This document shows positions 38,338-61,212 of a DNA stretch of 64,000 bases, piece by piece. The translations under genes and the position numbers were made by a program. Below the pieces are notes generated by a model. The model was not told where the DNA came from, did not search any database, and saw only the letters and a program-made list of their open reading frames with translations. The number at the start of each line of letters is the position of its first letter. The stretch's first letter is position 1. Where the stretch lies: the sequence record PQ390715.1. One strand, 5' to 3'.

Positions 38338-38342
38338 TTGTT

Positions 38343-43277: not shown

Positions 43278-43278
43278 T

Positions 43279-43770: not shown

Positions 43771-43779
43771 TTTATAATC

Positions 43780-46815: not shown

Positions 46816-47098
46816 ATATATTTTGTCTGAACAAAGGAACTAATTGAACTAAACTCGTTTGCATAATAATATGCATATGTACATTGTCATATGCCGTTTC
46901 GTATTGAAAACGTGCTGCTTCATCTTCTATGAAATTCGGAACTTGGACTGGATTCTCAAAATTTGTCCTTGTACTGAACTGTACATCATTGTCCTGTACC
47001 TTAATACCATATGAATTATCATTGTTATCAACTACATCAAATTCAATTAAACTACCATCTTTACTGACGTTTACTATATAAACCGAAAATCGACTCAT
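46754..47098 (-). CDS. family A paralogue
   Basis: DEAARFQYETAYD. Confidence 0.7.
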   Translation of the reverse strand: MSRFSVYIVNVSKDGSLIEFDVVDNNDNSYGIKVQDNDVQFSTRTNFENPVQVPNFIEDEAARFQYETAYDNVHMHIIMQTSLVQLVPLFRQNIYVHEVSINGIQSSVLFGTNM

Positions 47099-47610
47099 AA
47101 ACCTATTTCCTCTAAATCTTTGACAAATGTATCATAATCCGATAATGACAAAAATATGTCTGTACTGATGTTCTGACGTAATGTATTAAACAAATTATGT
47201 ACCTGTAATAAATCAGGTGAATAAATCAGGGATTGCTGGAAATACGATTCTTCTGTATCTAATATATCCCTGCACTCAATTTCACGAACTCGTTGGTATA
47301 TTGAATTTAATAATACATTTTCATCTTTGAGCATTGGAAGGTATCGGATGTACATGTTCTCCATCAACTCATCTTGGATTGAACCCCTGAACTGCAACAC
47401 GTATTCAAAACACATCACTACATCTTGTAGGTAATTGGCACTGTACTGATTACTATACACGATTTTATGACAACTGAACTCGGAATCATTTCTGAACCAA
47501 TTGTTACCCTCTTTCCTGTACTTATGACTAAGCTTCCCATCCTCCAACGCTCGAATAAACTTCATAATGTTAATTGCAAAATCATATGAATGATGCTTGT
47601 GTTGATGCAT
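47095..47610 (-). CDS. family A paralogue (long type)
   Basis: TEESYFQQSLIY. Confidence 0.75.
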   Translation of the reverse strand: MHQHKHHSYDFAINIMKFIRALEDGKLSHKYRKEGNNWFRNDSEFSCHKIVYSNQYSANYLQDVVMCFEYVLQFRGSIQDELMENMYIRYLPMLKDENVLLNSIYQRVREIECRDILDTEESYFQQSLIYSPDLLQVHNLFNTLRQNISTDIFLSLSDYDTFVKDLEEIGL

Positions 47611-47618
47611 TTTTTACC

Positions 47619-47813
47619 TCAATTCTGTCCGAAAAAATAACCAAAATGTTTAAAGCAAGAAAGCATTACTATGTTCATCACTCTATCATCAAATTCATCT
47701 TGTGTTTCTGCACATAATGTTTCACTGATATTCATATGTAATAATTCAAGCTGGAAACTATCGGTGAACCAATCAAACTTACGGTATTTTTGTTTAATAT
47801 CAATTATAAGCAT
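47619..47813 (-). CDS. small hypothetical protein
   Basis: 64 aa, fills gap in run. Confidence 0.55.
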   Translation of the reverse strand: MLIIDIKQKYRKFDWFTDSFQLELLHMNISETLCAETQDEFDDRVMNIVMLSCFKHFGYFFGQN

Positions 47814-47814
47814 A

Positions 47815-48438
47815 CTATATATCCAACCCTTTTACAACATCTACGAAATGTTCAAACACTTCTTTTGAAAAATAACCTCCTTCACAAAAAAGCATACTAA
47901 ACGGTGGCAGCATGTCCGATAACTCTTTAGCTAAATTGATTTCTGCTCTTAACTCTTGAACATCAATGATATCATGTACTAAAGATAATTGAAACATGAA
48001 TGCATCTACATCTTCATTCATTTCTGAATTGTAATATAACTCTTCAGGGAATTTGTCGGTTTCGTAATAATAAAAAACTTTATTGTTGAACACACCACTA
48101 ATAGGAACATCATTTTCATCTTTCTTTGAAATGTTTGTTTCCCATGACTCGATGTTATTAGGAACAAAAAAATCATAGGCTGATTTAGAACCCTGTACTG
48201 AATCCAACTTTATTCCATAATATTCCGTATCCATGTATTTCTGCTGCAATGTAATACCACGTGTACTGACATTCACTTGGAATATATCATCTTTATCTGG
48301 AACACTAAATGGAATACATAACACTGAATTCTCAGGGTATTTGGCAATGAATGCATCCAGCACTTTATTAAGCACTGGAATGGCAATTTTACTGTACTGC
48401 ATCAAATCATACATTTTAATTCTGGTCATATCATTCAC
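47815..48438 (-). CDS. family A paralogue
   Basis: VDAFMFQLSLVHD. Confidence 0.75.
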   Translation of the reverse strand: MNDMTRIKMYDLMQYSKIAIPVLNKVLDAFIAKYPENSVLCIPFSVPDKDDIFQVNVSTRGITLQQKYMDTEYYGIKLDSVQGSKSAYDFFVPNNIESWETNISKKDENDVPISGVFNNKVFYYYETDKFPEELYYNSEMNEDVDAFMFQLSLVHDIIDVQELRAEINLAKELSDMLPPFSMLFCEGGYFSKEVFEHFVDVVKGLDI

Positions 48439-48970
48439 CTGTGTATGTTTTCACCCTTAGCGATTCAAAATCCCATACATCACTGATTGTACCATTGTGC
48501 CTGTAATCATAATATTCTACTAATACATTATACAATAACTTCAACGATACAAATTCATGATTCCACGGAGCTTTATTCTCATGAACACATTTGGTGATAT
48601 AAGGTATAATATATAAACTAAACAACACTAATGGTGAATGTATACATTGCATTTGAAAATATTCTTCTTCTTGCATACAATGTTCAGGAATAATTAGATC
48701 ATAATGTGTCTCAAATAAATGTAAACCTATTGTGGTTTTTTTCGTATCACATGCGTACCATATTGTACTATCCGAAATAAATGGAATGATACCATTATTG
48801 TTTGCAATGTACATCATATGGTAAGAGCGATTTGTCTTGTTAAATATCTCGATACTTTCGATATTACTACAAATCATGTATTCAAGGCAATCAATGATCT
48901 TATCTTTAAATGTACCAATTTCATTGAATGACATTGCTTTCTGTACTTTTGATACTGTTGTACTGCTCAT
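48431..48970 (-). CDS. family A paralogue
   Basis: QEEEYFQMQCIH. Confidence 0.72.
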   Translation of the reverse strand: MSSTTVSKVQKAMSFNEIGTFKDKIIDCLEYMICSNIESIEIFNKTNRSYHMMYIANNNGIIPFISDSTIWYACDTKKTTIGLHLFETHYDLIIPEHCMQEEEYFQMQCIHSPLVLFSLYIIPYITKCVHENKAPWNHEFVSLKLLYNVLVEYYDYRHNGTISDVWDFESLRVKTYTGE

Positions 48971-49509
48971 ATGTTCTCCTTAAAAAAATCCAAATACTCT
49001 TCATTGAAAGCATATGTATCATCTTTTATGTTATGCACCACATAATCATAAAGAGCTATGAATGCAGGGATTATGATCTTACATGATTTATTATTGTATT
49101 TGTACTGCTCCAAATCAACGGTGTTCAATTTAGCAATAAGCATAGCAGCAAAGATATCTTCATGGCGGTGTACTGTGCTGTACTGAAAATACTCATCCTC
49201 TCCAATATCGGGATGATATAACGGTATAACCAAATTATTACGAATTGACATTTTATATTTTTGTAATGCAGCTAAATGCATGAACCACAATCTATCTTCA
49301 TGGAAAGATGGAAAAATAATTTTGTCTGTGCTAATAAAAATTTCTTCATTTCGATTATTTGTCACAAGAGGTGCATACATTTTAATTTTTGCAGATTTAA
49401 TAATTAAATTAAAAATATAATGAATCTTATGAACTGCACTTGATGCATCTTCGTATGTACTTGGGATTATGAAACTCACTATATGTTCTCCTTTAAAATG
49501 AATACACAT
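48967..49509 (-). CDS. family A paralogue
   Basis: GEDEYFQYSTVH. Confidence 0.72.
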   Translation of the reverse strand: MCIHFKGEHIVSFIIPSTYEDASSAVHKIHYIFNLIIKSAKIKMYAPLVTNNRNEEIFISTDKIIFPSFHEDRLWFMHLAALQKYKMSIRNNLVIPLYHPDIGEDEYFQYSTVHRHEDIFAAMLIAKLNTVDLEQYKYNNKSCKIIIPAFIALYDYVVHNIKDDTYAFNEEYLDFFKENI

Positions 49510-49536
49510 GATAACAGCTTTGGTCTTCTATGTCAA
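49508..49536 (-). promoter_or_regulatory. sigma70 promoter
   Basis: TTGACA-N17-TATCAT with TG. Confidence 0.75.
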
Positions 49537-49546
49537 TACCAAAACG

Positions 49547-49574
49547 AAAAAAGCCCATATCTTACGATACAGGC
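49547..49574 (-). terminator. Rho-independent terminator
   Basis: GCCTGTATC-GTAA-GATATGGGC + TTTTTT. Confidence 0.7.
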
Positions 49575-50068
49575 GTTATGGGCATGTTGATTTGAATTTC
49601 ATTGTACAAATCATCAATATATAGACATGAAAAAAACACACTATCTTGTACTATATTGTTGTGATAAAGCATTTTAAATACTACATAAAAAAATAAATCA
49701 ATATCATCGTGGACTAAATTCTGCTGGAACCACCACTCGTCTGTTAAATCTTGTGCATTAAAATCATCAGGAACTTCAATGAACGACATATCACAATCTT
49801 CTTTGTACTCAAACCACATGTCGTCATTCGGATAACGTTCATGCTTCTCTGGGTAACAATTGCTGGGATTAAATGTTAAAATATTAAACCCCGTAGAGCA
49901 ACGTTCTTTATTTAAAAATGTATTATTCCATACCTGATATTTTTCACCAACATCAAGCTCTTCTGTTACTGATTTTATTGCACATAATGTACTGTATATT
50001 GTTTCTATCTTGTGAACATATTTAAATGCAGCATCTAAGCTGAACTCTAAATCATACATGTACTGCAT
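49562..50068 (-). CDS. family A paralogue
   Basis: TDEWWFQQNLVHD. Confidence 0.72.
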   Translation of the reverse strand: MQYMYDLEFSLDAAFKYVHKIETIYSTLCAIKSVTEELDVGEKYQVWNNTFLNKERCSTGFNILTFNPSNCYPEKHERYPNDDMWFEYKEDCDMSFIEVPDDFNAQDLTDEWWFQQNLVHDDIDLFFYVVFKMLYHNNIVQDSVFFSCLYIDDLYNEIQINMPITPVS

Positions 50069-50388
50069 AAAATTACCTCAACTAAAGCAAGGACTGTATT
50101 GAATTCCACTATACTTGTAATTCCTTGAAGGTACATGTACTTTGCTACTACATATTTCTGTACTAAATTATAATTATTAAATTCCTCAAAATTGTAATTT
50201 AGAACAAAATCTGTACTCAAAAATATCTTATGCATCTCTAATGCACTTTGATAATACGCGTACAACTCACTGATATCAATACTGGTTAAATTATATTGTT
50301 CATATCTATGATACGGGATGGCTTCAATTTCAATACTATAAAACCATTCTCTTAACTTATTAATATCAAATGTATTATTCAGCTTCAT
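50047..50388 (-). CDS. hypothetical protein
   Basis: 113 aa, helical. Confidence 0.6.
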   Translation of the reverse strand: MKLNNTFDINKLREWFYSIEIEAIPYHRYEQYNLTSIDISELYAYYQSALEMHKIFLSTDFVLNYNFEEFNNYNLVQKYVVAKYMYLQGITSIVEFNTVLALVEVILCSTCMI

Positions 50389-50941
50389 AACTCAATACCT
50401 CCATTAAACACTCATACACACCATCAATCGCATAAGCACAAAAATTGAAATTAATTTTGTGATTCTTGTGTAATGGACTATTGTGTACTGTACTCATTAT
50501 GACATTATAAAATAACAAACGCACTGGTACAAGCATTGAACCTTGGAAAAATTCTTCCTCTGATTTATATGTATTGTACTCTATTGTTTTGTTCGTTTCT
50601 TTATCATATGTTACCATTACTAATGGGGCATTTTTATTATACCATGCGTACTCTAAATCATTCTTTCCAATAACAGCACCAGGGGCGAAATCCAAAAGAC
50701 CAATAACACTACGGGAATTTGGGGTATCAGGTGTATTGAATCGTTTATCAAAATGACTCGTGCACGCAATATATGTATTGTACTTCGATGGAATAATACC
50801 AATACATTTGTGGAAATGACGCTTGTGATATTTCTGGGCATTATATAAGGCTGCAACAATACAAGCTAACTTTTGTCCCATAAGGATTGCATTAGCGTAG
50901 GTGTACTGAATTTCATTGCTGGTACGGTACTTCGAGGTCAT
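50375..50941 (-). CDS. family A paralogue
   Basis: SEEEFFQGSMLV. Confidence 0.75.
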   Translation of the reverse strand: MTSKYRTSNEIQYTYANAILMGQKLACIVAALYNAQKYHKRHFHKCIGIIPSKYNTYIACTSHFDKRFNTPDTPNSRSVIGLLDFAPGAVIGKNDLEYAWYNKNAPLVMVTYDKETNKTIEYNTYKSEEEFFQGSMLVPVRLLFYNVIMSTVHNSPLHKNHKINFNFCAYAIDGVYECLMEVLSYEAE

Positions 50942-51224
50942 AATATTTCCTTTGCCATATCATGGGCTTAAAATCAATAACAGCTTTCTGTATCTTTTTT
51001 AATAATAAGACATCATAACCACCCGTGTCAATCACTAATTGCTGTTGGAACAATTCTTCATCGGATAATGTATTGAAATCTACAAAATAATCTGTAACTA
51101 TCGAATCATTTAAATGTGCCATGTACCAACCTGAACTTCTTGAATAAATCAAATTCCACCCATCGTCATCATCTTCTAATTCAACATAAATCATATCTGG
51201 GGTATACATCATTTTATACTTCAT
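50913..51224 (-). CDS. family A paralogue (short type)
   Basis: DFNTLSDEELFQQQLVID. Confidence 0.75.
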   Translation of the reverse strand: MKYKMMYTPDMIYVELEDDDDGWNLIYSRSSGWYMAHLNDSIVTDYFVDFNTLSDEELFQQQLVIDTGGYDVLLLKKIQKAVIDFKPMIWQRKYYDLEVPYQQ

Positions 51225-51762
51225 AACTATATCCTTGCATTAATAAATCATAAACTACATGGACTAAATTTAATTGAATATAAAATTTTAAACCTTTAAT
51301 TAATGGATTCAAATGCATTGTACTGAATAACATTAGATACATCATCTCATGCGGTTTTGTGATTAATGATTTTTGAAATACTTCAGCTTCATCATAAGGG
51401 TCTATGAACTGAAATTTGTCTTCATCATAATTTGTATTGGAATGCTGATATATAAAATAATCATCATTGGTATTGTACCACAAATATCCTTCGAATCCTG
51501 TACTAACATCTTTGGTCAATGGGGATGCTGATACTGGATTTGAACTGATTAATGCACCTACATCAACAATCCCCGTTGTATCATATTCGATTTCAACATC
51601 AATATCAATGTATTTCCTTGCGATATCTGCGTTTATGGACAAATATAAACTACCACCTGTCCTCTGACTCAGGATTCCATCTATATGCGATATAGGATGG
51701 TTGTTATTGAGGATAAGCATTATTGTACTTATCTTGTGTGCTAATAACTCTATCTCATTCAT
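51214..51762 (-). CDS. family A paralogue
   Basis: DEAEVFQKSLIT. Confidence 0.75.
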   Translation of the reverse strand: MNEIELLAHKISTIMLILNNNHPISHIDGILSQRTGGSLYLSINADIARKYIDIDVEIEYDTTGIVDVGALISSNPVSASPLTKDVSTGFEGYLWYNTNDDYFIYQHSNTNYDEDKFQFIDPYDEAEVFQKSLITKPHEMMYLMLFSTMHLNPLIKGLKFYIQLNLVHVVYDLLMQGYSYEV

Positions 51763-51962
51763 AATTTACCTATCGATGGATACCTAGGATTTGTAGGATG
51801 TAAAATCCTGTCCTGTACTGAAAGGTGCTCAAATGTAATTAAACTCAAATAATAATCGTAATTATCAATACCACCCTTCAAATGTATATTGTAATACATC
51901 TTAATACTATCTAATAATGAATCCTGTAATGCATTTAATGTTATCGTATTAATCTTTTGCAT
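51759..51962 (-). CDS. small hypothetical protein
   Basis: 67 aa. Confidence 0.55.
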   Translation of the reverse strand: MQKINTITLNALQDSLLDSIKMYYNIHLKGGIDNYDYYLSLITFEHLSVQDRILHPTNPRYPSIGKL

Positions 51963-52110
51963 TAATGTTCTTCTCTTAAAAATCGTTTGATAGCATAATC
52001 TAAATAAAATTCATAACACATGCTATCTCTGTTCTTTATCCATATTTTGTAATCGGATTTTATATTACGCAACAAATAATTTGTATTAATTGTGTAATAA
52101 TCTAATCGCC

Positions 52111-52503
52111 CTAATCTTTCCATTTAATAGGATACTCCTTTCCTTGTACTATATATGACAAAATCCATCCGTAATGAATAGGATGATTTTTATCTGAATC
52201 AGGAATAAAATATAAAGCTGTACTTGGATTATGACTGAATAAATCTTTATTGTCAAATGTAAAATGTGATAATATAATTTTCCTTGCACTTGGACGAATA
52301 ACATTCTTAACACTGAACTCTGAACCTTTGTATTTCTCCGATAATTCAAATAATGCATCTGTAATTAAATCACTGATCTCTTGGATTACAAAATTCTGAT
52401 AAAATGCATTAATCTCTTTTAACTCTGTATACAATTCACTTCTGGTATTCAAAAGAAATATTACTTTTTTAAGATCCTGAACTATTTCTGGATTCATATT
52501 CAT
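52111..52503 (-). CDS. family C-like paralogue (dispersed)
   Basis: SEKYKGSEFSV. Confidence 0.65.
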   Translation of the reverse strand: MNMNPEIVQDLKKVIFLLNTRSELYTELKEINAFYQNFVIQEISDLITDALFELSEKYKGSEFSVKNVIRPSARKIILSHFTFDNKDLFSHNPSTALYFIPDSDKNHPIHYGWILSYIVQGKEYPIKWKD

Positions 52504-52735
52504 TTATCTCATTCTGTAACTTAAGCATCAAAATTTGCATATTAATTTTTTGTAAAAGGTGCTTGATAAATTTCTGTGCCATTTCTTCTTGTTCTTTTGT
52601 ACCAAGATAAAATAACAGATTAAATTCTGATAATCGCAAAGAAAAATCTTCATCACCACCCTTTAAACAAAAATCCCTGTACTTTGTAGCGTACAAATAT
52701 TGGTTTACCTTTTTATAATACCCTGTGTTTTGCAT
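52469..52735 (-). CDS. family B paralogue (dispersed)
   Basis: FYLGTKEQEEM. Confidence 0.72.
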   Translation of the reverse strand: MQNTGYYKKVNQYLYATKYRDFCLKGGDEDFSLRLSEFNLLFYLGTKEQEEMAQKFIKHLLQKINMQILMLKLQNEINEYESRNSSGS

Positions 52736-52923
52736 ACTATCTCCGTTCGCAACGAATTTATATAATAATGAACAAATTGTTCTTGTGAACGTGTTCCAAG
52801 AAAAATAAACATATCAAACTCTGTTGTTTTTAAATTCAATGCATCTTTTGTAAAACTCCTGTTGAATTCCCTGTACTTTTGGGTCTTCCATTCTTGATTA
52901 ATTGTCTTGTATATCGATTTCAA
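52705..52923 (-). CDS. family B paralogue (dispersed)
   Basis: IFLGTRSQEQF. Confidence 0.72.
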   Translation of the reverse strand: MKSIYKTINQEWKTQKYREFNRSFTKDALNLKTTEFDMFIFLGTRSQEQFVHYYINSLRTEIVCKTQGIIKR

Positions 52924-53224
52924 TGATTCTCCCTGATGTACCTTGTATTAGCTTATCATACATATCGAGCATCACTTTTTGAATACTAATTAGTACTGGC
53001 ATCGTGCAAATATCAATGTCGTATACTAAGCTGTACTGGAATAATTCATCTTCCTGCATTTGTACTAAATTAGGTAAAGGATAATTGTCTGCCTCTTCAT
53101 CCTGGTACTTGAAATGCATAACACCATCCTTTTTGTACAAAAGAATGTCAATATCACCTAACTCATCAGCATAACCAAAAATACATATACTCGATGTTTT
53201 TGCTATATTAAATTTCATCTCCAC
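52898..53224 (-). CDS. family A paralogue (short type)
   Basis: QEDELFQYSLVYD. Confidence 0.75.
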   Translation of the reverse strand: MEMKFNIAKTSSICIFGYADELGDIDILLYKKDGVMHFKYQDEEADNYPLPNLVQMQEDELFQYSLVYDIDICTMPVLISIQKVMLDMYDKLIQGTSGRIIEIDIQDN

Positions 53225-53460
53225 CTCTCACCGTCAGCACAAGAGTACTGGTACGTTGTCGTTAGGGTAGGGACCATGTTTGTAATGGGCATGTTGTTAA
53301 CAATAACCGTAACAGGCATAAGAATCGTCTCTTCTCTACTCTGTCCTGTCCTTGTGCAATTCATCTTCTGCATTTCATCTGAATCCATGAAATACAATAC
53401 AAATGGTGCAATCCCAAGAACAATACACAAAACGATAAGGAAATTTAAAAAATTTAACAT
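53215..53460 (-). CDS. small membrane-anchored protein
   Basis: N-terminal TM; Cys pair in the tail. Confidence 0.7.
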   Translation of the reverse strand: MLNFLNFLIVLCIVLGIAPFVLYFMDSDEMQKMNCTRTGQSREETILMPVTVIVNNMPITNMVPTLTTTYQYSCADGERWR

Positions 53461-53489
53461 AATTTTTACCCTATGATTAACGTTAGTGT

Positions 53490-53518
53490 ACTATATCAGT
53501 AATGAAAAGTACTGTCAA
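53490..53518 (-). promoter_or_regulatory. sigma70 promoter
   Basis: TTGACA-N17-TATAGT with TG; AGTACT abuts the -35. Confidence 0.8.
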
Positions 53519-53519
53519 G

Positions 53520-53924
53520 CTAGTATTGCACTGTTCTAATGAAAGTACCTGAACTCATGGATTTAAGCTTATGAACCTCTTCCTGTATACCCTTGAGCAA
53601 CTCTAAAGGTATAGGTACATCATGTACTAAGCTGTACTGAAAGTATTCTTCTTCAGATAAAGTACTAACATCTGGAACGCCAATTTTAGTTATATAATCT
53701 TGATGTGTTGACCAATAAATTATATCTTCAGTAGAATTGTACTCCCCATATACTGAACAGTATTGATGAATATCTTTCCTGTACCCTTGAGCAATAAAGA
53801 ACTTATCTACTGCATTACCAGCATTAATAGAATTCACTTCGATTGTCACAGTACTTGAGCTTGTATAACTCTTAGTATTATCAGTACTTTTAATACTCAA
53901 CTGTGTGTTCTTCATAATCACCAT
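53520..53924 (-). CDS. family A paralogue (short type)
   Basis: DVSTLSEEEYFQYSLVHD. Confidence 0.78.
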   Translation of the reverse strand: MVIMKNTQLSIKSTDNTKSYTSSSTVTIEVNSINAGNAVDKFFIAQGYRKDIHQYCSVYGEYNSTEDIIYWSTHQDYITKIGVPDVSTLSEEEYFQYSLVHDVPIPLELLKGIQEEVHKLKSMSSGTFIRTVQY

Positions 53925-54234
53925 TAGGCTCCTGTTTAGATTCTTTCATTAGTACTATCATCTTATGTACTAATGGCATAGGAAACTCTAAATCCCATAC
54001 TAATGATTCCTGAAAGTATTCCTCTGGTGATAAAGTACTTAAATCTTTAATATCAACGTGCTTGTATATTTTATTTTCGTAATTAACAAATGATATATAT
54101 AAATCACTAACATAAGAATCATAGGTAATTGTGAATGGCTTACCCTTGTAATCCATTACATCTCTACATAGACTACTTTTGATATATGTATGTTCAAATG
54201 ATTTATATACCTTGAGTTGTATATTAGTTTTCAT
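53890..54234 (-). CDS. family A paralogue (short type)
   Basis: DLSTLSPEEYFQESLVWD. Confidence 0.78.
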   Translation of the reverse strand: MKTNIQLKVYKSFEHTYIKSSLCRDVMDYKGKPFTITYDSYVSDLYISFVNYENKIYKHVDIKDLSTLSPEEYFQESLVWDLEFPMPLVHKMIVLMKESKQEPNGDYEEHTVEY

Positions 54235-54499
54235 ATTTCTCTTTATTAGCTTGTTTGGTTTTATAGTGAATTAAATCTATTAATGTAATCAAGTACAACG
54301 TCAAATAGTACTCTTGTTGATCTGTACCTAATGATACAAAGAACTTGTGCTCATAGATTAAAACCTGTTTCTCTTCAAATGGACATTTAATCCTCTGTAT
54401 AGGCTTAAGTAAATGATAGTACTTATTAAATCTATGATACATTTCTAGTTCTGTCAGTACTTTCATATTAAACACATACTCCATTAGCAGTAGCATCAC
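54224..54499 (-). CDS. family B paralogue
   Basis: VSLGTDQQEYY. Confidence 0.75.
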   Translation of the reverse strand: MMLLLMEYVFNMKVLTELEMYHRFNKYYHLLKPIQRIKCPFEEKQVLIYEHKFFVSLGTDQQEYYLTLYLITLIDLIHYKTKQANKEKYEN

Positions 54500-54689
54500 G
54501 TAAAGCTGTCAAATACTTCTGTACGGCTTGCTCTTGCTTATTTGTACCTAAAAGTATATACATCCATAATTCACTGTAATGTACATCTTGTGTATAAGGG
54601 TCATTGTAACTTTTTGATAATATAGCATCAAATTCAGATGCATGAACCCTTGTGAACTTAAGAATATCTTGTTGTGTTATGATTCTCAT
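54468..54689 (-). CDS. family B paralogue
   Basis: ILLGTNKQEQA. Confidence 0.78.
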   Translation of the reverse strand: MRIITQQDILKFTRVHASEFDAILSKSYNDPYTQDVHYSELWMYILLGTNKQEQAVQKYLTALRDATANGVCV

Positions 54690-54901
54690 ATCTTTTCCTG
54701 TACAATCTGTATAAGAATACCTATGTGTGAATTAACAGTTCTCTCTTGATGCTGTGTTCCTAAGAGTGTCAGTACTATCATATCTGAACGCAAAAGATTT
54801 TTTTCAAGTTCACTTATATCAGTTCTTGAATCAAGTGCCATATATTTGTGATTATTCTTCCTGAATAGTGCCAAGTACTCTTGGTTTGATATTATCTTCA
54901 T
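54686..54901 (-). CDS. family B paralogue
   Basis: TLLGTQHQERT. Confidence 0.78.
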   Translation of the reverse strand: MKIISNQEYLALFRKNNHKYMALDSRTDISELEKNLLRSDMIVLTLLGTQHQERTVNSHIGILIQIVQEKI

Positions 54902-55113
54902 AGTTTACTTTTAATTTCCATTAAAAGTGCTCTAATATGCTCATTGACAAATCGCTCTTGGGAATCTGTGTCTAGGGTGAGAAGCATTCTTAAATCGGAA
55001 CCTCTGATGGTATATTCTAAATCATTCTTTGATTCTCGCATAAGTTTCTGAAAGGATGAGAAGTGTAATCCCATGAGTTCAATGTATTCTGCTGTTCCTA
55101 GTGGTTTTGGCAT
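54898..55113 (-). CDS. family B paralogue
   Basis: LTLDTDSQERF. Confidence 0.75.
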   Translation of the reverse strand: MPKPLGTAEYIELMGLHFSSFQKLMRESKNDLEYTIRGSDLRMLLTLDTDSQERFVNEHIRALLMEIKSKL

Positions 55114-55331
55114 TTTAGTTCAATCGCTCGTTTAAGTGTATTAATATAATCTTTAATGTCGTGTTCTTGATAGTTCGTTCCAAGGGTAGCTAGAACATAG
55201 ACTTCATTTCTCTTAATAATTTTATCCATATCTGGTATATCTGATGTGTTAATGACGAAGAGCTTCAAAAACAGTCCATTTATGATTGTTAGGTATTCTA
55301 CATCGGTAATGATTTTCATTTGCATTTGCAT
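55098..55331 (-). CDS. family B paralogue
   Basis: ATLGTNYQEHD. Confidence 0.78.
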   Translation of the reverse strand: MQMQMKIITDVEYLTIINGLFLKLFVINTSDIPDMDKIIKRNEVYVLATLGTNYQEHDIKDYINTLKRAIELKCQNH

Positions 55332-55537
55332 TTTCTCAGTACTGATTCTTTAAGTTCATTGATGTAGCACTCTACATATTCTTCTTGTAGGTTTGTTCCG
55401 ATATGTAACAGTACTCTTAAATCTGCTCTCAGTACTTCTTTATCATCTTCATCTATATCAGACAGTGTTATGTTTAAGAATTTACTTGAACTCTCTATAA
55501 GTAATATTACTGAATCACCTTTGCTTAAAATTTTCAT
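55316..55537 (-). CDS. family B paralogue
   Basis: LHIGTNLQEEY. Confidence 0.78.
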   Translation of the reverse strand: MKILSKGDSVILLIESSSKFLNITLSDIDEDDKEVLRADLRVLLHIGTNLQEEYVECYINELKESVLRKCKCK

Positions 55538-55745
55538 AATCTCTTTTTGCTTTCCTCGCCAAAAGGTACATATACGATTCTTCGTATTGTGCTTGGTAGT
55601 TTGTGTTTAAGAGTCGAAACAACTTCTGTTCTGCTAGAACGAGTTGCTTATCTTCATAACAACGATAGCGTATCAACTTTTTGTATTCGATGTTGATTAC
55701 ATCCATTACTATAAGCCCATGTTCATCATCTGTCAAGTGTTTCAT
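55515..55745 (-). CDS. family B paralogue
   Basis: RLLNTNYQAQY. Confidence 0.75.
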   Translation of the reverse strand: MKHLTDDEHGLIVMDVINIEYKKLIRYRCYEDKQLVLAEQKLFRLLNTNYQAQYEESYMYLLARKAKRDYENFKQR

Positions 55746-55984
55746 GCATTTTTTCTTTTTCTTATATGTTTAGTTAAAAGGTATATTAGTTTTCTATTGT
55801 ATTCTTCCTGATAGTTTGTTCCTAATAGTGCAAGAAGTTTTGCTTCAACTAAAGCTAATTGACGTTCTTCAAATGTGTGTTCCAGTATGTACTTTGGGTT
55901 TGATTTTTTAGCGTAATCACTATTAGTTTTCATTACAATCTTATGATATTCATTAACTGTTAGGATTTTTAAATACTTGATCAT
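55742..55984 (-). CDS. family B paralogue
   Basis: ALLGTNYQEEY. Confidence 0.78.
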   Translation of the reverse strand: MIKYLKILTVNEYHKIVMKTNSDYAKKSNPKYILEHTFEERQLALVEAKLLALLGTNYQEEYNRKLIYLLTKHIRKRKNA

Positions 55985-56204
55985 GTATCTTTTCCTTTAT
56001 AGAGAATTTAAGATATCGAAGCATACTTTCAATGTAATACTCTTGTCTGTCAGTGCCAAGAAAGTACATGAGTTGAATGTATAAAACTTCTGCACTCCTT
56101 TCCGCTGGAGACTTGTTTGTGTCGTTTGGAAGTTGATTTGTATGTTTTCTTGATTTAATTAGTCGTTCTTTTAACTCATCGTCTGTTAAGTATTTCATTT
56201 GCAT
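55953..56204 (-). CDS. family B paralogue
   Basis: YFLGTDRQEYY. Confidence 0.78.
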   Translation of the reverse strand: MQMKYLTDDELKERLIKSRKHTNQLPNDTNKSPAERSAEVLYIQLMYFLGTDRQEYYIESMLRYLKFSIKEKIHDQVFKNPNS

Positions 56205-56430
56205 TTACTTTTTCCTTAATAGTGATTTTAAGATATCTAATCATACGTGCAACATATTCCTCTTGTCTATCAGTTCCCAGAAGATATGGTAGTGATTGGA
56301 ATAATACTTCTGCACTCCTTTCTGCTGGGGTTTGGTTTAGGTCAATTGGACGTTTATTGGTATATCTCTTGGCACGAACTAATCTCTCGACGTATTCATT
56401 ATAGGTTAAGTATATCATTTCATTTTGCAT
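56176..56430 (-). CDS. family B paralogue
   Basis: YLLGTDRQEEY. Confidence 0.78.
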   Translation of the reverse strand: MQNEMIYLTYNEYVERLVRAKRYTNKRPIDLNQTPAERSAEVLFQSLPYLLGTDRQEEYVARMIRYLKITIKEKVNANEILNRR

Positions 56431-56650
56431 TTACTTTTTCCTTAATACTCATTATAAGATGTTCAATCATATTTTGAACCATAAATTCTTGTTTATCAGT
56501 TCCAAGAACGTATGGTAGCTTCTGAAACAATACATTTGCAGATACTTCAGATATTGATTGATTTGGACCGAACTTAAGAGTAATGTTTTTGGTTTTTAAC
56601 ATCTTCTCTTGAAATTCTTCATTCGTTAAGTATATCATTTCATTTTGCAT
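56420..56650 (-). CDS. family B paralogue
   Basis: YVLGTDKQEFM. Confidence 0.78.
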   Translation of the reverse strand: MQNEMIYLTNEEFQEKMLKTKNITLKFGPNQSISEVSANVLFQKLPYVLGTDKQEFMVQNMIEHLIMSIKEKVNAK

Positions 56651-56866
56651 TTACATTCTCTCATATATATTTTGGGTTAAAAGGTCAATCCAGATTTCCA
56701 CATATCGTTGTTGGTGTTGCGTCCCTAACAGTACACCCAACTTAGCTTCACACTCTAATAACAATCTGGTTTTGTATGGTAGACTTTGGAATCCTATAGT
56801 AGCATCTAATTTGGTAATTGCATAGTTGATTCGGATGAATCTTTCTTGCAATGTGATGTTGATCAT
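56651..56866 (-). CDS. family B paralogue
   Basis: VLLGTQHQQRY. Confidence 0.78.
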   Translation of the reverse strand: MINITLQERFIRINYAITKLDATIGFQSLPYKTRLLLECEAKLGVLLGTQHQQRYVEIWIDLLTQNIYERM

Positions 56867-57153
56867 TTCTTAGTACACCTCAGTGGTTGGGTCATTTGAT
56901 GAAAGTACAGCTTACCTCTGATTTCCAGTAGTAACTCCGCGATTAAGCGATTTACTTCTGTATCTTGATAGTTTGTTCCTAAGAATACACCCATCTTTAA
57001 CTCACGCATCATAATCATTTTCTTACTGTGTTGAATTTCTGGGTTGTGATAGATTGTATTACGTTTGTGCGTAATTTTTGTCATACGCTCGGTATATTCA
57101 TCTTTACTTAAATTGATCATTTGCATGTTCATCAACCTCACATTTATTTTCAA
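56863..57153 (-). CDS. family B paralogue
   Basis: VFLGTNYQDTE. Confidence 0.78.
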   Translation of the reverse strand: MKINVRLMNMQMINLSKDEYTERMTKITHKRNTIYHNPEIQHSKKMIMMRELKMGVFLGTNYQDTEVNRLIAELLLEIRGKLYFHQMTQPLRCTKK

Positions 57154-57155
57154 TA

Positions 57156-57422
57156 CTATTCTTTAGTTTGTAGATATAGTTTTCTTCCAATATATCTCTT
57201 AAGTGCGATTATGTATTCATCTACATAATACTCCTGATAGTTTGTTCCTATGAATGCACCCACCTTTAACTCAAGTTTCATAATCATCTTATTTCCGTGT
57301 TTAATGACTTCTCCGTGATGGATTTCATTAAGTCCAGGTGCAATTTTTACCAGGCGTTCTTTATATTTTGCTTGAGATAATTTAATCATTTTCATGTTAA
57401 TTACCCTTACATTTATTTTCAA
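57156..57422 (-). CDS. family B paralogue
   Basis: AFIGTNYQEYY. Confidence 0.78.
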   Translation of the reverse strand: MKINVRVINMKMIKLSQAKYKERLVKIAPGLNEIHHGEVIKHGNKMIMKLELKVGAFIGTNYQEYYVDEYIIALKRYIGRKLYLQTKE

Positions 57423-57621
57423 TACTATTCATTAGTTCTCTAAGATAGTTTTTTACCTTACCTGCCTGATAGTTGGTCCCTAGAAAGTTGCATAACTCTG
57501 CTTCTATAATTTTGATTTTTCTGATATCAGGCTTCAATCTTTTGTTATTGAATATTTGAATCCTTATATCTCTGGATGCATTTAAACGTTTTTGATATTC
57601 ATGGTAAGTTAAATTAATCAT
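57397..57621 (-). CDS. family B paralogue
   Basis: NFLGTNYQAGK. Confidence 0.78.
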   Translation of the reverse strand: MINLTYHEYQKRLNASRDIRIQIFNNKRLKPDIRKIKIIEAELCNFLGTNYQAGKVKNYLRELMNSIENKCKGN

Positions 57622-57836
57622 TTACTTTGTATCTCTCTCTGGAGGGCATCAATTAACATCAGTACAGCATTCTCTTGATAGTTTGTTCCTAAGACTGAAA
57701 GCATCTTAATCTCATTTACTAAAATCAACTTCTTTGAGGGTTCAATAATGTGACTATCATAAACGGCCTTCCGTGCTGGATAAGTTTTCGCCAGTAGAAC
57801 ATAAAATTCGTCTTTACTTAAATTAATCATTTGCAT
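57618..57836 (-). CDS. family B paralogue
   Basis: SVLGTNYQENA. Confidence 0.78.
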   Translation of the reverse strand: MQMINLSKDEFYVLLAKTYPARKAVYDSHIIEPSKKLILVNEIKMLSVLGTNYQENAVLMLIDALQREIQSK

Positions 57837-58045
57837 TTACTTTTAACCTCTTTCTGTAGAGCGTCAATCCATAGATCTACATACATTTGTTGATAGTTTG
57901 TGCCTAAGAGTGCACCTACATAGAGTTCAGTTACTAGTGCGTGCTTAAGGTTAGCTTGGATGCTCTTATCGCTTGATATCATTCTCCTTCTGCTTCCACA
58001 TGTTTTCAGGAGTCTGATGTATTCAAAGCCTTGTAAATTTCTCAT
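57827..58045 (-). CDS. family B paralogue
   Basis: ALLGTNYQQMY. Confidence 0.78.
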   Translation of the reverse strand: MRNLQGFEYIRLLKTCGSRRRMISSDKSIQANLKHALVTELYVGALLGTNYQQMYVDLWIDALQKEVKSKCK

Positions 58046-58257
58046 ATTTTGGATACCACCTTGTTACGTAAGGAACTTAATAATACGTCAGTGTAGATGT
58101 TTTGATAGTTTGTCCCTACGAATACACCCAACTTCATTTCAGCTATTATAACACATTTGTCCTCTTGTGCAATAGATTTGTTTAACACAATACTATACAC
58201 TTTTGATTTGATAGTTTGTAACCTCCAATGATACTGATACTCATTAAGGATTATCAT
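58042..58257 (-). CDS. family B paralogue
   Basis: VFVGTNYQNIY. Confidence 0.78.
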   Translation of the reverse strand: MIILNEYQYHWRLQTIKSKVYSIVLNKSIAQEDKCVIIAEMKLGVFVGTNYQNIYTDVLLSSLRNKVVSKI

Positions 58258-58504
58258 TCTCTTTCCTCCAGATTTCGGTTCTCATGTGTTGGCAGTGTGC
58301 ATCAATATATTGCTCTATCGATCTGGCGATTGCTGTTTTATCAGTGCCTGTCATCAGTACAAGCATCTCGGCCTCACAGTGAAGTAAACGCATGATATCA
58401 TAGGGTAATATTTCAGATACCGTGTCATAGTGTTTCTGTGCCAGTGTCTGCAATAGTTTACAATACATTTTGTGATTTAGTCTTTGTCGCATTGTTTCTT
58501 CCAT
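58244..58504 (-). CDS. family B paralogue (divergent)
   Basis: EAEMLVLMTGTDKTAI. Confidence 0.68.
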   Translation of the reverse strand: MEETMRQRLNHKMYCKLLQTLAQKHYDTVSEILPYDIMRLLHCEAEMLVLMTGTDKTAIARSIEQYIDAHCQHMRTEIWRKENDNP

Positions 58505-58749
58505 TCTCTTCTGGCTTGGCGGGTTTTATCTGATATTTCGTTTCTCAATGCAGAGATATATCGTAGAGTGAACAGTTCTTGATAGTTAGTCCCTATGAAT
58601 TTATTAAGATATACATCAGCGTTGACGATATCAGCTTCACGGGAATTATAAAGTTTATTGTTCGTGCGGAGGGTGTTTAGAAGAGAGAAGAGGGCAGTCT
58701 GATACTCCACTCCTGATAAAATCTTCATGTTTTGTGAGCAAATAATCAT
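58477..58749 (-). CDS. family B paralogue
   Basis: KFIGTNYQELF. Confidence 0.75.
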   Translation of the reverse strand: MIICSQNMKILSGVEYQTALFSLLNTLRTNNKLYNSREADIVNADVYLNKFIGTNYQELFTLRYISALRNEISDKTRQARREWKKQCDKD

Positions 58750-58969
58750 CTAGTTTATCCTGTATAACATTCGTTAATTGTTCGATATATTCTGTGCAAA
58801 ACTTATCTTGATATTGAGTCCCCATAAAGTACAGCAACCATAGCTCATTAACTTTAGCTCGCATTTGGTTCCATGTAAGGCTGGGGTCACCGTAGACTAT
58901 CCTTGTGATGGGGGTTAGTTTACGAATTATAGTTTCAAATTCATCATCAGTTAAGTGTTTCATTTGCAT
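58655..58969 (-). CDS. family B paralogue
   Basis: YFMGTQYQDKF. Confidence 0.75.
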   Translation of the reverse strand: MQMKHLTDDEFETIIRKLTPITRIVYGDPSLTWNQMRAKVNELWLLYFMGTQYQDKFCTEYIEQLTNVIQDKLDDYLLTKHEDFIRSGVSDCPLLSSKHPPHEQ

Positions 58970-59178
58970 TTGTCCCTTATTAAATCAGTGAGGGCAACTA
59001 TGTGTGCAACAACATACTCTTCCTGAAAGTTCGTCCCCAGTACAGCCATCATGCGTATATCGGTGGTGTTTATCCTGTGTTCCCTTACACATAAACCTTC
59101 TGTGTGAGGAAGTGTAAAATATTTGTTTATTGCAGCAACGATAATTTTATTCTTCTCGTAATTACTTAAATGTTTCAT
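58960..59178 (-). CDS. family B paralogue
   Basis: AVLGTNFQEEY. Confidence 0.78.
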   Translation of the reverse strand: MKHLSNYEKNKIIVAAINKYFTLPHTEGLCVREHRINTTDIRMMAVLGTNFQEEYVVAHIVALTDLIRDKCK

Positions 59179-59387
59179 AGTTTGCTCTTAATGTAGTTCT
59201 GAAGTTCAATTAAGTATTTCCCTACATAATACTCCTGAAAGTCTGTATCCAAAAATGCACCCATAAGTAAATCCTTCTCCATTGCCCTTGATAAGTTAAG
59301 GTCTGCATTTGAAAGGTATATAAGTAATATTTCAGTCTGGACAGAATTGAAACGTTTCTTATATTCTTCTGGTGTTAATATAATCAT
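59175..59387 (-). CDS. family B paralogue
   Basis: AFLDTDFQEYY. Confidence 0.78.
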   Translation of the reverse strand: MIILTPEEYKKRFNSVQTEILLIYLSNADLNLSRAMEKDLLMGAFLDTDFQEYYVGKYLIELQNYIKSKL

Positions 59388-59599
59388 AATTTGCTCCTGA
59401 TGTATTTCTCAAGAGATGACAAATACTTTTCCTCATAATACTCCTGATAGTCTGTTCCCAAGAATGCACCCAAAAGTATTTCATTTTCCAATACCTCGGC
59501 TAAGTTTAAATCAGACGTCTCTTCGTATATTATGAGGATTTCAAGTTGTCTGGCAGCGATGCGTTCAGTATATTGATATGAGTTTTCTATAATAATCAT
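59384..59599 (-). CDS. family B paralogue
   Basis: AFLGTDYQEYY. Confidence 0.78.
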   Translation of the reverse strand: MIIIENSYQYTERIAARQLEILIIYEETSDLNLAEVLENEILLGAFLGTDYQEYYEEKYLSSLEKYIRSKL

Positions 59600-59805
59600 A
59601 TTTTACTCTTAATATCTTCTATTAAAAATCGAATCCATTCTTCAACATAATCTTCCTGATGGTTTGTGTTCAGTACAGCCAACATGCGGATCTCTGCTCT
59701 TGCAACTTCAATTTCAGTTTTAGGCAGGTCTTTGCTGATATCCACCATTAAGTCCATGTATTTCAAGATAAGACCGTATGATTGGGTTCGTGTTATAGTT
59801 TTCAT
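59596..59805 (-). CDS. family B paralogue
   Basis: AVLNTNHQEDY. Confidence 0.78.
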   Translation of the reverse strand: MKTITRTQSYGLILKYMDLMVDISKDLPKTEIEVARAEIRMLAVLNTNHQEDYVEEWIRFLIEDIKSKI

Positions 59806-60002
59806 TGTTTCCTCGTGGACAATATTTTATTTTTCAATGTATCCATATATTGCCACACCCATCTACCCTGATAGTTTGTTCCCAATGTAATCAAAAGGTA
59901 TAACTCCATTCGTTCTACGTGTGTGTCTGTGTTGTAAATCTTTACGTAGTTTTTACGTAACAGTGATTGATATTCTTCTTTATTTAAAATACGCATTTTC
60001 AT
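59802..60002 (-). CDS. family B paralogue
   Basis: ITLGTNYQGRW. Confidence 0.78.
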   Translation of the reverse strand: MKMRILNKEEYQSLLRKNYVKIYNTDTHVERMELYLLITLGTNYQGRWVWQYMDTLKNKILSTRKQ

Positions 60003-60226
60003 AGTTTACTCGTTATATCTTCAATTAAATACCAAATCCAATCGTTGACATACCTTTCCTGAAAGTTAGTTCCAATGAATAGTGCCATAATTAATTCACG
60101 CTTATAGGCAATACCACGGTCATGGGACTTATACATTATCATAGCCATGTTATTGATAAGTCTTTCGTGGTGCTGTTCTTTAGTTAAAATACGCATAGGG
60201 ACTCCCTTAAAATTAATATCAATCAT
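59999..60226 (-). CDS. family B paralogue (likely start MRIL)
   Basis: LFIGTNFQERY. Confidence 0.78.
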   Translation of the reverse strand: MIDINFKGVPMRILTKEQHHERLINNMAMIMYKSHDRGIAYKRELIMALFIGTNFQERYVNDWIWYLIEDITSKL

Positions 60227-60254
60227 ATTTTATACGATTCATATAAAAAGTCAA
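60227..60254 (-). promoter_or_regulatory. sigma70-like promoter heading the family B array
   Basis: TTGACT-N16-TAAAAT. Confidence 0.6.
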
Positions 60255-60351
60255 TAACATTTTATTCGTAATACCCCTTTATCGAAGTCGCTAAGGTTAC
60301 CCGCCCTTTAGCCCCCTACGCATTTTGCCATAGTCCAATCCCTTTTATTTC

Positions 60352-60417
60352 AAAAAAGTCAAGGGATTACCTATGCATTTTTTTAACGCATAATTTTAAA
60401 AACGCCTTGACTTTTTT
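60352..60417. repeat. 13-bp perfect inverted repeat in a gene-free junction
   Basis: AAAAAAGTCAAGG (60352-60364) and CCTTGACTTTTTT (60405-60417). Confidence 0.8.
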
Positions 60418-60445
60418 CTGAATCAGTACTAGATCCCTTTACGCA

Positions 60446-60655
60446 TTAATCCTTCGTTACGCTAACGATTATCTGTGTATCCCCGTAGTCCTGCCATACT
60501 TCCACGCCATCGGTCGCCCTGGTTAGTCGTGCTGTCATCTGCTTAATGGTCTTAGGCTTTAGTGGAACCTGTTGCAGTACTGTACGCATAGCATCATTGA
60601 CGTTATCATGTACGCCTGCAATAGTACCTAGAACGCTGTATACTGTATAGAACAT
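60446..60655 (-). CDS. hypothetical early-region protein
   Basis: 69 aa; GGAGG SD; GC-richer codons. Confidence 0.75.
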   Translation of the reverse strand: MFYTVYSVLGTIAGVHDNVNDAMRTVLQQVPLKPKTIKQMTARLTRATDGVEVWQDYGDTQIIVSVTKD

Positions 60656-60723
60656 ATGTATGCCCTCCTGATATAGTTAAGGCCGCTACAAGGCGGCCTA
60701 TGATGTTTGGTGATGTGTAACGC

Positions 60724-61125
60724 TTACAGTCCTAAGATAGTGCGTGCTTCGTTACGTTCCGTACACAGCTGCATGATGTGAGCAAGTAAGTCCTTGCTAA
60801 TGTATCCGGTGTTCATAGCTTCACGAATAGATACATCATAAGCACCGAACCCCGTGCGAACGATACGCACATCATTCAGGTTAGTATTATAGATACCGCC
60901 GAGATCAACGGCTTCGAATACTACATCAACAGAATATTCATTGTTGCCATCGTGGAAGTTTTCCAGTGCAATAGTATTGGATACCGCCCAACGTTTGCAG
61001 TTTCCAATGATGCGGCACTGTTCCGGTTGGATAGTACCATTACTTACAGCGTACTCCAGTGCATCTTTACCAAAAGTCCGAGCCAGTACTAAAACGTCAG
61101 CGAAGGAATTGATTGAGAAGGTCAT
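60724..61125 (-). CDS. hypothetical early-region protein
   Basis: Start moved to MTFSINS (AAGGAG SD). Confidence 0.75.
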   Translation of the reverse strand: MTFSINSFADVLVLARTFGKDALEYAVSNGTIQPEQCRIIGNCKRWAVSNTIALENFHDGNNEYSVDVVFEAVDLGGIYNTNLNDVRIVRTGFGAYDVSIREAMNTGYISKDLLAHIMQLCTERNEARTILGL

Positions 61126-61147
61126 GATAAAACTCCTTAATTTAGGA

Positions 61148-61212
61148 GGGAGAACCATTTCCCCCTCTCTATGTAAAACATTATACTTGATTCTAAGTAC
61201 TATGCAAGTACT
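61148..61212 (-). promoter_or_regulatory. promoter + 5' stem-loop cassette, copy 1
   Basis: TTGCAT-N16-TATAAT then GGGGGAA-ATGG-TTCTCCC hairpin. Confidence 0.8.

Follow-up and report, generated by a model that had tools for sequence, protein, structure and literature searches.

A tandem array of 27 small helical paralogs in Escherichia phage SHEFM2K as a possible repertoire of early host-directed proteins

Why should a jumbo phage carry 27 consecutive genes for one kind of small protein, and what might these proteins do? The question is raised by a stretch of DNA from Escherichia phage SHEFM2K (Asteriusvirus), of whose 348 kb genome bases 1-64000, referred to as the window, were analysed. At 54224-60226, on the minus strand, 27 open reading frames of 65-104 amino acids follow one another, abutting or overlapping. 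An earlier note on this DNA had described a 27-gene family in this interval; the family is real, but the interval misses four further members that were found with an HMM, so that the family numbers 31 and is the largest paralog family within the window. The four are dispersed, two at 39.5-39.9 and two at 52.5-52.9 kb, also on the minus strand. With an HMM trained on the 27 array members only, scores of 37 bits were obtained for 52705-52923, 23.5 bits (E 1.8e-6) for 52469-52735 and 23.4 bits (E 2e-6) for 39655-39873; the fourth, 39486-39677, scored 39 bits (E 2e-11), and part of it is annotated as phrog 4148 in the record.

Membership within the array was assessed by leave-one-out HMMs, in which 26 of the 27 genes were recognised by a model of the other 26, at 37-73 bits and E values of 2e-11 to 2e-22. 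The first gene, B01 (59999-60196, 49 bits), has a longest ORF that reaches 60226, the upstream limit given in the earlier note, but most likely starts at the ATG at 60196, which follows a Shine-Dalgarno-like AAGGGAG. Downstream of it come B02 (59802-60002, 47 bits) and B03 (59596-59805, 58 bits), both with an ATGA junction, then B04 (59384-59599, 53 bits), B05 (59175-59387, 66 bits) and B06 (58960-59178, 65 bits), and B07 (58655-58969, 64 bits), whose C-terminal tail of about 30 residues overlaps B08 (58477-58749, 44 bits, HMM-supported start at 58728) in a different frame. After the divergent B09 (58244-58504), the series continues with B10 (58042-58257, 59 bits), B11 (57827-58045, 67 bits), B12 (57618-57836, 66 bits), B13 (57397-57621, 63 bits), B14 (57156-57395, 73 bits), B15 (56863-57126, 72 bits), B16 (56651-56866, 49 bits), B17 (56420-56650, 53 bits), B18 (56176-56430, 63 bits), B19 (55953-56204, 67 bits), B20 (55742-55984, 51 bits), B21 (55515-55745, 37 bits), B22 (55316-55537, 61 bits), B23 (55098-55331, 62 bits), B24 (54898-55113, 44 bits), B25 (54686-54901, 55 bits) and B26 (54468-54689, 44 bits). 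The last gene, B27 (54224-54466, 41 bits), is overlapped by a gene of a different family at 53890-54234. B09 gave no leave-one-out match; it has an insertion after G-T-D and is without the conserved Gln, and it is tied to the family as a probable, highly diverged member by hhalign (67%, E 5e-5, 65 co-linear columns) together with its position and size. The same proteins are covered by phrog_4148 (PHROGs v4), which matches 26 of the array members (best E 9e-27) as well as distant members from RaK2 and metagenomes and with which the source record tags many of the array genes, and by phrog_28039, which matches 14; no function is assigned to either. The phrog_4148 entry also gives no structure and does not mention a tandem organisation, and a literature search found no mention of it.

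Across the 27 members, the central motif is made of L (74%), G (85%), T (100%), N (59%, with D in 30%), Q (96%) and E (70%), and three further columns are conserved, namely E at column 9 (70%), L at column 63 (96%) and K at column 70 (81%); no conserved Cys or His column was seen in the family alignments. The columns agree with the earlier description of one family of paralogs in which the core and the turn are conserved and the loops and first two helices vary freely. Four synonymous codons are used for the Thr, four for the Gly and five for the Leu of column 63, which places the conservation at the level of the protein and not of a DNA repeat; the array was not detected as a repeat by Tandem Repeats Finder. 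The mean identity between paralogs is 25%, reaching 49% between B04 and B05, 47% between B15 and each of B14 and B12, and 57% between B17 and B18, and because this last value is the maximum the paralogs are judged, from their sequences, to be old and not recent copies.

Such low identity could also be expected of functionless or decaying tandem duplicates held by duplication pressure alone, and a member that is split in BF17, as well as a single ORF with two family domains in SD-15_S21, would fit with that. This explanation, which the earlier note had itself named as a possible refutation, is scarcely credible and is already contradicted by the selection analysis: in 135 ortholog pairs the median dN/dS was 0.28, with 98% of the pairs below 1, the pooled estimate was 0.33-0.37, and the orthologs of the divergent B09 gave 0.20-0.44. 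Even at the columns that are hypervariable among paralogs, pN/pS between orthologs was 0.46, with a bootstrap CI (0.35-0.61) that excludes 1, as against 0.22 at core columns and 0.18 at eight conserved polar columns; these values pool non-independent, recombining sequences, and the “surface” and “core” classes were assigned by hydrophobicity and helix periodicity. Against decay, moreover, stand the age of the paralogs, the reading frames, which are open in all 27 array members, and the presence of the family in 36 of the 36 Asteriusvirus records of the collection. Each copy is maintained under purifying selection, and because of this the array probably represents a collection of early, host-directed proteins and not junk duplicates.

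The fold was predicted with AlphaFold2 for B11. Instead of the three-helix bundle proposed earlier, the model (pLDDT 97.7, pTM 0.82) has four helices, at residues 6-14, 17-25, 31-45 and 52-71, and a small bridge between the N-terminus and a loop, formed by residues 2 and 49. Paralogs from 121Q, UB and slurp01 have independent models in BFVD, and these superpose at TM 0.73-0.92. The common scaffold would then be a compact four-helix unit around a hydrophobic core, with a fixed turn (helix stop, bridge and helix start), G-T-[ND]-x-Q-E, in which the Gly would end helix 3, the Thr would connect to the N-terminal strand through the bridge, and the Asn or Asp and the Glu would presumably cap helix 4. 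No solved relative was found by profile search of the PDB (best E 0.47) or by Foldseek against the PDB (best E 3, TM at most 0.53 among the 50 matches listed), and Foldseek against BFVD returned the family itself and nothing else. Neither the PDB profiles nor Foldseek revealed similarity in sequence or fold to helix-turn-helix regulators, AsiA-like anti-sigma factors or solved anti-defence proteins.

The conserved turn suggests another reading, in which the proteins are adaptors or regulators that all dock onto one machine, of the host or of the phage, by a conserved polar pole (the N-terminus, E9 and G-T-N-x-Q-E), while their variable surfaces fine-tune or divert it. The invariance of the Thr and near-invariance of the Gln in paralogs that differ so much, the persistence of the motif in RaK2-like and uncultured relatives, and the fact that ortholog pN/pS is lowest at the eight conserved polar columns, which could mark a common partner or a ligand, all speak for it. 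Each residue of the motif has, however, an ordinary structural explanation in the rules of helix capping, with Gly as C-cap, Asn or Asp as N-cap and Glu at N3; in the model the Thr lies in the bridge to residue 2, and B09 is conserved even though it is without the Gln. A common partner of this kind is considered unlikely.

The charge of the proteins is just as varied as their sequences, with pI values from 4.3 to 9.8 and net charges from -8.5 to +7.8. A pI above 8 in 17 of the 31 members would be compatible with nucleic-acid binders, i.e., regulators of transcription or translation or DNA-coating proteins, and would find a parallel in Bacillus phage G, where an “unprecedented” expansion of about 35 zinc-ribbon proteins was suggested to have transcription-factor or DNA-binding roles (Iyer et al. 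2021, PMC7824862). Both cases concern dozens of copies of one small, function-unassigned protein in a jumbo phage; the array, however, is all-helical, has no conserved Cys/His metal site, belongs to another host and clade, and has no sequence relation to the zinc-ribbon family. Binding to nucleic acids is in fact improbable, as five members are acidic and several are near neutral, the Lys of column 70 is the only widely conserved basic residue, Foldseek found no helix-turn-helix or other DNA-binding fold, and no match to a DNA-binding family in Pfam or NCBIfam passed threshold.

How might these genes be expressed? A sigma-70-like promoter, TTGACT-16-TAAAAT, was located by a scan and by reading of the sequence at 60227-60254 (minus strand), directly upstream of the array and of the AAGGGAG and ATG of the first gene. 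Both hexamers are kept in five Asteriusvirus genomes (SHEFM2K, 121Q, G17, Ec-M-J and Ecwhy_1), with changes in the spacer; in the region as a whole, promoter-like sites showed no excess over chance (52 found, 48 expected). The ATGA four-nucleotide overlap is possible at 14 of the 26 junctions, most of the others overlap or abut, and a spacer of at least 23 nt occurs only once. The conserved promoter and the junctions bear out the tight packing behind one promoter near 60.25 kb that had been noted before, and from this anatomy and position the genes may be translationally coupled. In vB_Ec-M-J, about 100 bp separate the end of the annotated terminal repeat from the array downstream of it, and in fEgEco12, whose terminal repeat of 20,993 bp was confirmed by restriction digests (PMC13070987), the array match spans 21,679 to 25,953 of the record. 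The array thus adjoins the inner side of a terminal repeat of about 21 kb, and the two marks of an early block, a host-type promoter and a site adjacent to a direct terminal repeat, are both found here. The host-takeover module of SPO1 and the pre-early genes of T5 likewise consist of many small, function-unassigned genes with host-type promoters at or near a long terminal repeat, although those genes are mostly unrelated and not one paralog family. The array is similar to these modules in anatomy and site, with no known link in sequence or fold. In CBB, a related phage, an equivalent region of small genes has RpoD-like promoters, and its authors suspected early host-takeover genes (PMC5259590). 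By analogy with related systems and by genomic position, the array would be expressed early, from one polycistronic transcript that starts next to the inner end of the long terminal repeat.

The distribution of the family was followed by searching 1.84 billion proteins exhaustively with a profile, which yielded 80 clusters, and all the clusters whose source was looked up belong to Asteriusvirus, to RaK2-like Klebsiella phages or to uncultured relatives. In eight phages that were compared, the order of the array is constant, the copy number varies between 23 and 29, identity is mosaic (69-100%), and individual members are present or absent between strains. B14, for example, is 100% identical at the amino-acid level in 18 phage records but absent from others, and of seven relatives compared only G17 and Ecwhy_1 yielded an ortholog of B17. 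The array also diverges more than its flanks (83.5% versus 94.7% in Ec-M-J). The repertoire would accordingly be reshuffled among strains as single members are gained, lost and recombined. The tight, coupling-type junctions and the common scaffold might instead point to a single intracellular assembly, hetero-oligomeric or polymeric, whose subunits would be supplied in near-equal amounts through translational coupling and could use the conserved polar positions as interfaces, much like the mixed subunits envisaged in the earlier note. This reading is very improbable: single members are gained and lost independently among close relatives; RaK2 has only about 13 members within the 50-kb stretch examined, dispersed singly or in twos and threes; the model of one chain by itself is already confident and compact; and members are missing from virions, as gp467c-gp489c are all absent from the proteome table of phAPEC6, in which proteins of about 8 kDa can escape mass spectrometry.

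Do any known systems provide a function? Searches of Pfam, NCBIfam, PHROG, PDB, Foldseek and PADLOC named none, in keeping with the earlier note. Pfam and NCBIfam gave no match for the family, no similarity to known anti-defence or takeover proteins was found by sequence or fold (Pfam, PDB, Foldseek and PADLOC), and PADLOC, which holds defence models only, returned scattered single matches. The array resembles anti-CRISPR and other anti-defence loci in its small, clustered, phage-restricted genes, their turnover between strains and their diverse charge, and differs from them as one family in 27 copies, such loci usually being made of unrelated families; no helix-turn-helix regulator was seen to accompany the array. 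Paralogs had been noted among about 10% of the products of RaK2 (PMC3622015) and for 22 ORFs of CBB (PMC5259590), in papers that describe neither this family with its motif and fold nor an array of 23-29 copies.

Taken together, we tentatively prefer a reading that comes close to being probable, in which the array is a battery of specialised early binders for host takeover or counter-defence. The array would represent a multigene family that is specific to its clade and encodes small, soluble proteins absent from the virion, in which every paralog has its own surface and charge and the surface itself is under purifying selection, and separate paralogs would engage different proteins of the host, or of competing elements. 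Binding as the activity, and the identity of the targets, are inferred; the idea of a binder library fits with the paralog-specific constraint at surface columns and with the heterogeneous charge. An arms race would be expected to leave some positively selected columns, and the finding that no column shows clear positive selection (highest pN/pS about 1.1) counts against binders of this kind. The fuller proposal, that some 30 paralogs on a new four-helix scaffold each neutralise or redirect a different host protein, with strains swapping members like cassettes, is more doubtful. The host targets envisaged for such a repertoire are defence sensors and hubs of transcription, translation or proteolysis.

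The genes of jumbo phages are mostly function-unassigned, and here is a family with a confidently predicted fold, no solved neighbour and copy-specific purifying selection. If its members are specialised binders of host proteins, each phage would carry about 30 natural variants on one scaffold, with about 80 sequence clusters overall, a compact system in which to study how the takeover and counter-defence tools of phages diversify, and the library would be a ready-made supply of new inhibitors against E. coli proteins and of new ligands for proteins of bacteria. If, alternatively, one partner is common to all, the family would constitute a new regulatory module of RaK2-like phages. Either way, it merits a name and a structure.

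The 27 minus-strand ORFs at 54224-60226 could be aligned over ~74 columns, and the claim of the earlier note that they form a tandem run of small genes of one family was borne out by this alignment, by a leave-one-out analysis and by an independent profile. When each ORF was left out and searched for with an HMM made from the other 26 members, 26 of the 27 were recovered at 37–73 bits, and phrog_4148 likewise matched 26 of the 27, its exception not being equated with the leave-one-out exception. The sole leave-one-out failure was the ORF at 58244-58504, which has no conserved Q and carries an insertion. Since a profile of its orthologs aligned co-linearly with the family in hhalign (67%, E 5e-5), it was regarded as a probable member that has diverged very strongly. 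Outside the interval proposed earlier, the HMM, built without them, found four dispersed members on the minus strand at 39486-39677, 39655-39873, 52469-52735 and 52705-52923.

Across the array (n = 27), T is invariant (100%), followed by Q and L63 (96% each), G (85%), K70 (81%), L47 (74%), E53 and E9 (70% each) and N50 (59%, plus D in 30%). The conserved motif residues use several synonymous codons and Tandem Repeats Finder detected no DNA repeat across the array; the conservation is therefore at the protein level. A search of Rfam gave no match. Between 54000 and 60000 the AT skew of the plus strand is -0.17 to -0.22, versus about -0.03 in neighbouring minus-strand genes, and the GC skew flattens too, a shift that probably stems from the A-rich codons (K, E, N, I) of helical proteins.

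The member at 57827-58045 was modelled with AlphaFold2 using an alignment of the 31 paralogs (pLDDT 97.7, pTM 0.82), and the predicted fold has four helices (residues 6–14, 17–25, 31–45 and 52–71) instead of the three-helix bundle expected beforehand, with a small bridge from residue 2 to the Thr of the G-T-[ND]-x-Q-E motif. Helix-capping rules are the basis for reading the Gly, Asn/Asp and Glu of this motif: on this reading, Gly would end helix 3, Thr would bridge to the N-terminus, and Asn/Asp together with Glu would cap helix 4. That all members are adaptors docking one and the same partner through a conserved pole is possible, with a smallish probability. Foldseek found no solved neighbour in the PDB (best E 3; TM ≤0.53 among the matches listed), and a partial likeness to T7 gp11 and KP32 tail tubular protein A (45 columns, rmsd 1.8, prob 0.41–0.63) was judged not significant. 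Against BFVD only the family itself was matched (paralogs of 121Q, UB, slurp01 and PBECO4, with TM up to 0.92), so the fold is reproducible across paralogs. A sequence profile search of the PDB found nothing, and when all members were scanned with Pfam, NCBIfam and PADLOC, only scattered single sub-threshold matches came up. Binding of nucleic acids by these proteins is an unlikely function, given that some members are acidic (the pI ranges from 4.3 to 9.8) and that no DNA-binding fold was found.

The genes are tightly packed, an ATGA overlap being possible at 14 of the 26 junctions and nearly all of the remaining ones overlapping or abutting. At three junctions (near 58965, 57832 and 55325) the sequence is dual coding: the last residues of the upstream gene product are K-C-K or K-C-K-C-K, and the same bases in another frame provide the downstream start, M-Q-M or M-Q-M-Q-M. 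Some of the "conservation" at the termini may therefore come from start and stop signals that overlap. The seventh member from the promoter has a C-terminal tail of ~30 residues (58655-58749) that overlaps the start of the eighth by 74–95 nt in another frame; this long form is common to BF17, and the G17 ortholog is shorter.

A 220-bp non-coding stretch (60227-60445) lies 5′ of the array and contains a predicted promoter on the minus strand (TTGACT-16-TAAAAT, 60254-60227), followed by AAGGGAG and the ATG at 60196. Both hexamers are kept in 121Q, G17, Ec-M-J and Ecwhy_1, with a variable spacer. A second TTGACT in the stretch is flanked by the arms of an inverted repeat (ATCCCTT...AAGGGAT), and the stretch itself corresponds to the inner end of the vB_Ec-M-J direct terminal repeat, as annotated; AAAGGGATTG, considered as a promoter-associated motif, was rejected as it is not recurrent in the window. 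Further upstream, at 60680-60699, a GC-rich hairpin of 8 perfect bp (AGGCCGC...GCGGCCT) separates the gene at 60724-61158 from that at 60446-60655; it resembles a terminator, but the coding strand shows no clear run of T. In PBECO4 (L004, 9945-10310) and BF17 (L005, 8080-8445), an additional 121-aa ORF with its own promoter-like TTGACA-17-TATGAT is inserted ahead of the first array member, on the side facing the terminal repeat. Promoter-like sites within the array occur at chance level only, and no convincing terminator was seen 3′ of it. Given that the last member and the genes after it overlap, the transcription unit probably extends past 54.2 kb.

The direct terminal repeat annotated in vB_Ec-M-J (21,525 bp) ends ~100 bp upstream of the array, and in fEgEco12, whose terminal repeat of 20,993 bp is confirmed by restriction digests (PMC13070987), the array match spans 21,679-25,953. 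Since several other long records also place the array 20–23 kb from one end, it is the first block inside the terminal repeat, oriented for inward transcription. For the related phage CBB, the authors of the study suspect that a region of small genes with RpoD-like promoters comprises early host-takeover genes (PMC5259590), and none of the array products of phAPEC6 (gp467c-gp489c) was present in the virion proteome of that phage (PMC7247149).

The genes neighbouring the array are all of unknown function. On the minus strand at 34504-54234, two more paralog families are interleaved with the outlying members, one of 11 proteins (phrog_13866/15629, 53–172 aa) with a common E-x-F-Q-x-x-x-V core, which hhalign did not relate to the array family, and one of nine (phrog_12674/9317, 147–186 aa); a further family of three lies at 17069-18475. 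Amid these families, just downstream of the array, an 81-aa protein (phrog_8826; 53215-53460, minus strand) has a strongly hydrophobic N-terminus and is probably membrane-located. A long run of abutting minus-strand ORFs of 180–200 aa at 24000-34600 may be what the earlier note called family A. BLASTP clustering did not link these ORFs, and two scanned from the run each matched a single PHROG of its own of unknown function (phrog_29489 and phrog_38467).

The 6-kb array was matched at 100% identity, and at unchanged coordinates, in Escherichia phage SHEFM2K (PQ390715.1, 348,006 bp), which makes the window bases 1-64000 of this record. A further 35 records matched, all of Escherichia or Salmonella phages of ~310–385 kb; where the taxonomy was examined, the phage is classified as Asteriusvirus (the 121Q/PBECO4 group). 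The annotation calls each of the matched genes a "hypothetical protein". A profile search of all 1.84 billion representative proteins (E ≤ 1e-3) yielded only 80 clusters, each of 52–122 aa. In the 20 clusters examined, the named members are all hypothetical proteins from Asteriusvirus, from Klebsiella phages of the RaK2/K64-1 type or from phage contigs of ~350 kb within E. coli assemblies. In RaK2, the 50-kb stretch examined contains ~13 members, singly or in groups of two or three, and two uncultured relatives have 17 (12 of them contiguous) and 12 members. This distribution marks the family as characteristic of the jumbo-phage clade, and of the contiguous blocks seen the largest is that of the E. 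coli phages. Two RaK2 members, RaK2_00362 and RaK2_00372 (L009, 13170-13535 and 16814-17161), are fused to an additional C-terminal domain of ~55 aa, which is common to the fused members of RaK2-like and uncultured phages (also P0073, P0081 and L010 14156-14557). Pfam and PHROG scans matched nothing outside the N-terminal family domain, and AlphaFold2, with a shallow alignment, gave a fused RaK2-type member a pLDDT of 36.5, with two strands and then two helices predicted at low confidence in the C-terminal domain. In two uncultured relatives (L010 4832-5083 and L012 1176-1391), a small gene matching Pfam ParE_like (PF24732) lies a few kb upstream of the clusters.

Paralogs share a mean of 25% identity, neighbours being slightly closer (30%), with a maximum of 57%. 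A recent "accordion" amplification was rejected on these values. Identity to RaK2 or metagenome members (~30%) equals that within the genome, so that the comparison does not discriminate a lineage-specific origin; on both observations the family is old and not recently amplified. The comparison of copy number and order suggested in the earlier note covered eight Asteriusvirus genomes, in which the order is conserved with 23–29 copies and the presence of individual members varies. BF17 has one member split into two pieces, and one ORF of SD-15_S21 has two family domains. Members are thus gained and lost independently, which makes it quite improbable that they are subunits of one assembly. Ortholog identity varies from gene to gene (69%–100%), with stronger divergence in the array than in the sequence on either side.

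The dN/dS check on related phages gave an ortholog median of 0.28, with 98% of 135 pairs below 1 (pooled over recombining, non-independent sequences), which contradicts decaying duplicates, by now a very remote explanation. With one ortholog pair per member, the values were 0.22 for the hydrophobic core, 0.18 for conserved polar columns and 0.46 (bootstrap CI 0.35–0.61) for the 32 columns classed as hypervariable among the paralogs; no column showed clear positive selection (maximum ~1.1). The value of the hypervariable columns suggests that copy-specific surfaces, assigned from hydrophobicity and helix periodicity, are conserved within each copy. That surfaces differing between copies are kept within each is the strongest argument that the copies are individually functional and specialised.

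The proteins themselves are already known in databases, as hypothetical proteins and as phrog_4148. No description of the family, array, motif or fold was found in the literature on 121Q/PBECO4, Asteriusvirus, phrog_4148 and jumbo-phage paralogs, nor was the family described in publications on jumbo phages, RaK2, CBB, phAPEC6, Sharanji, fEgEco12 and UE-S1; the paralogs of RaK2-like phages have been mentioned in general terms only (PMC3622015). The closest published case is a zinc-ribbon family expanded to ~35 copies in Bacillus phage G (PMC7824862). The array can be filed with such lineage-specific small-protein expansions of jumbo phages, but with an uncharacterised fold. Tentatively, and with a little less than even confidence, we read it as a battery of small early proteins that would combine a common scaffold with a different binding surface in each member, and that may serve host takeover or counter-defence while being reshuffled between strains.
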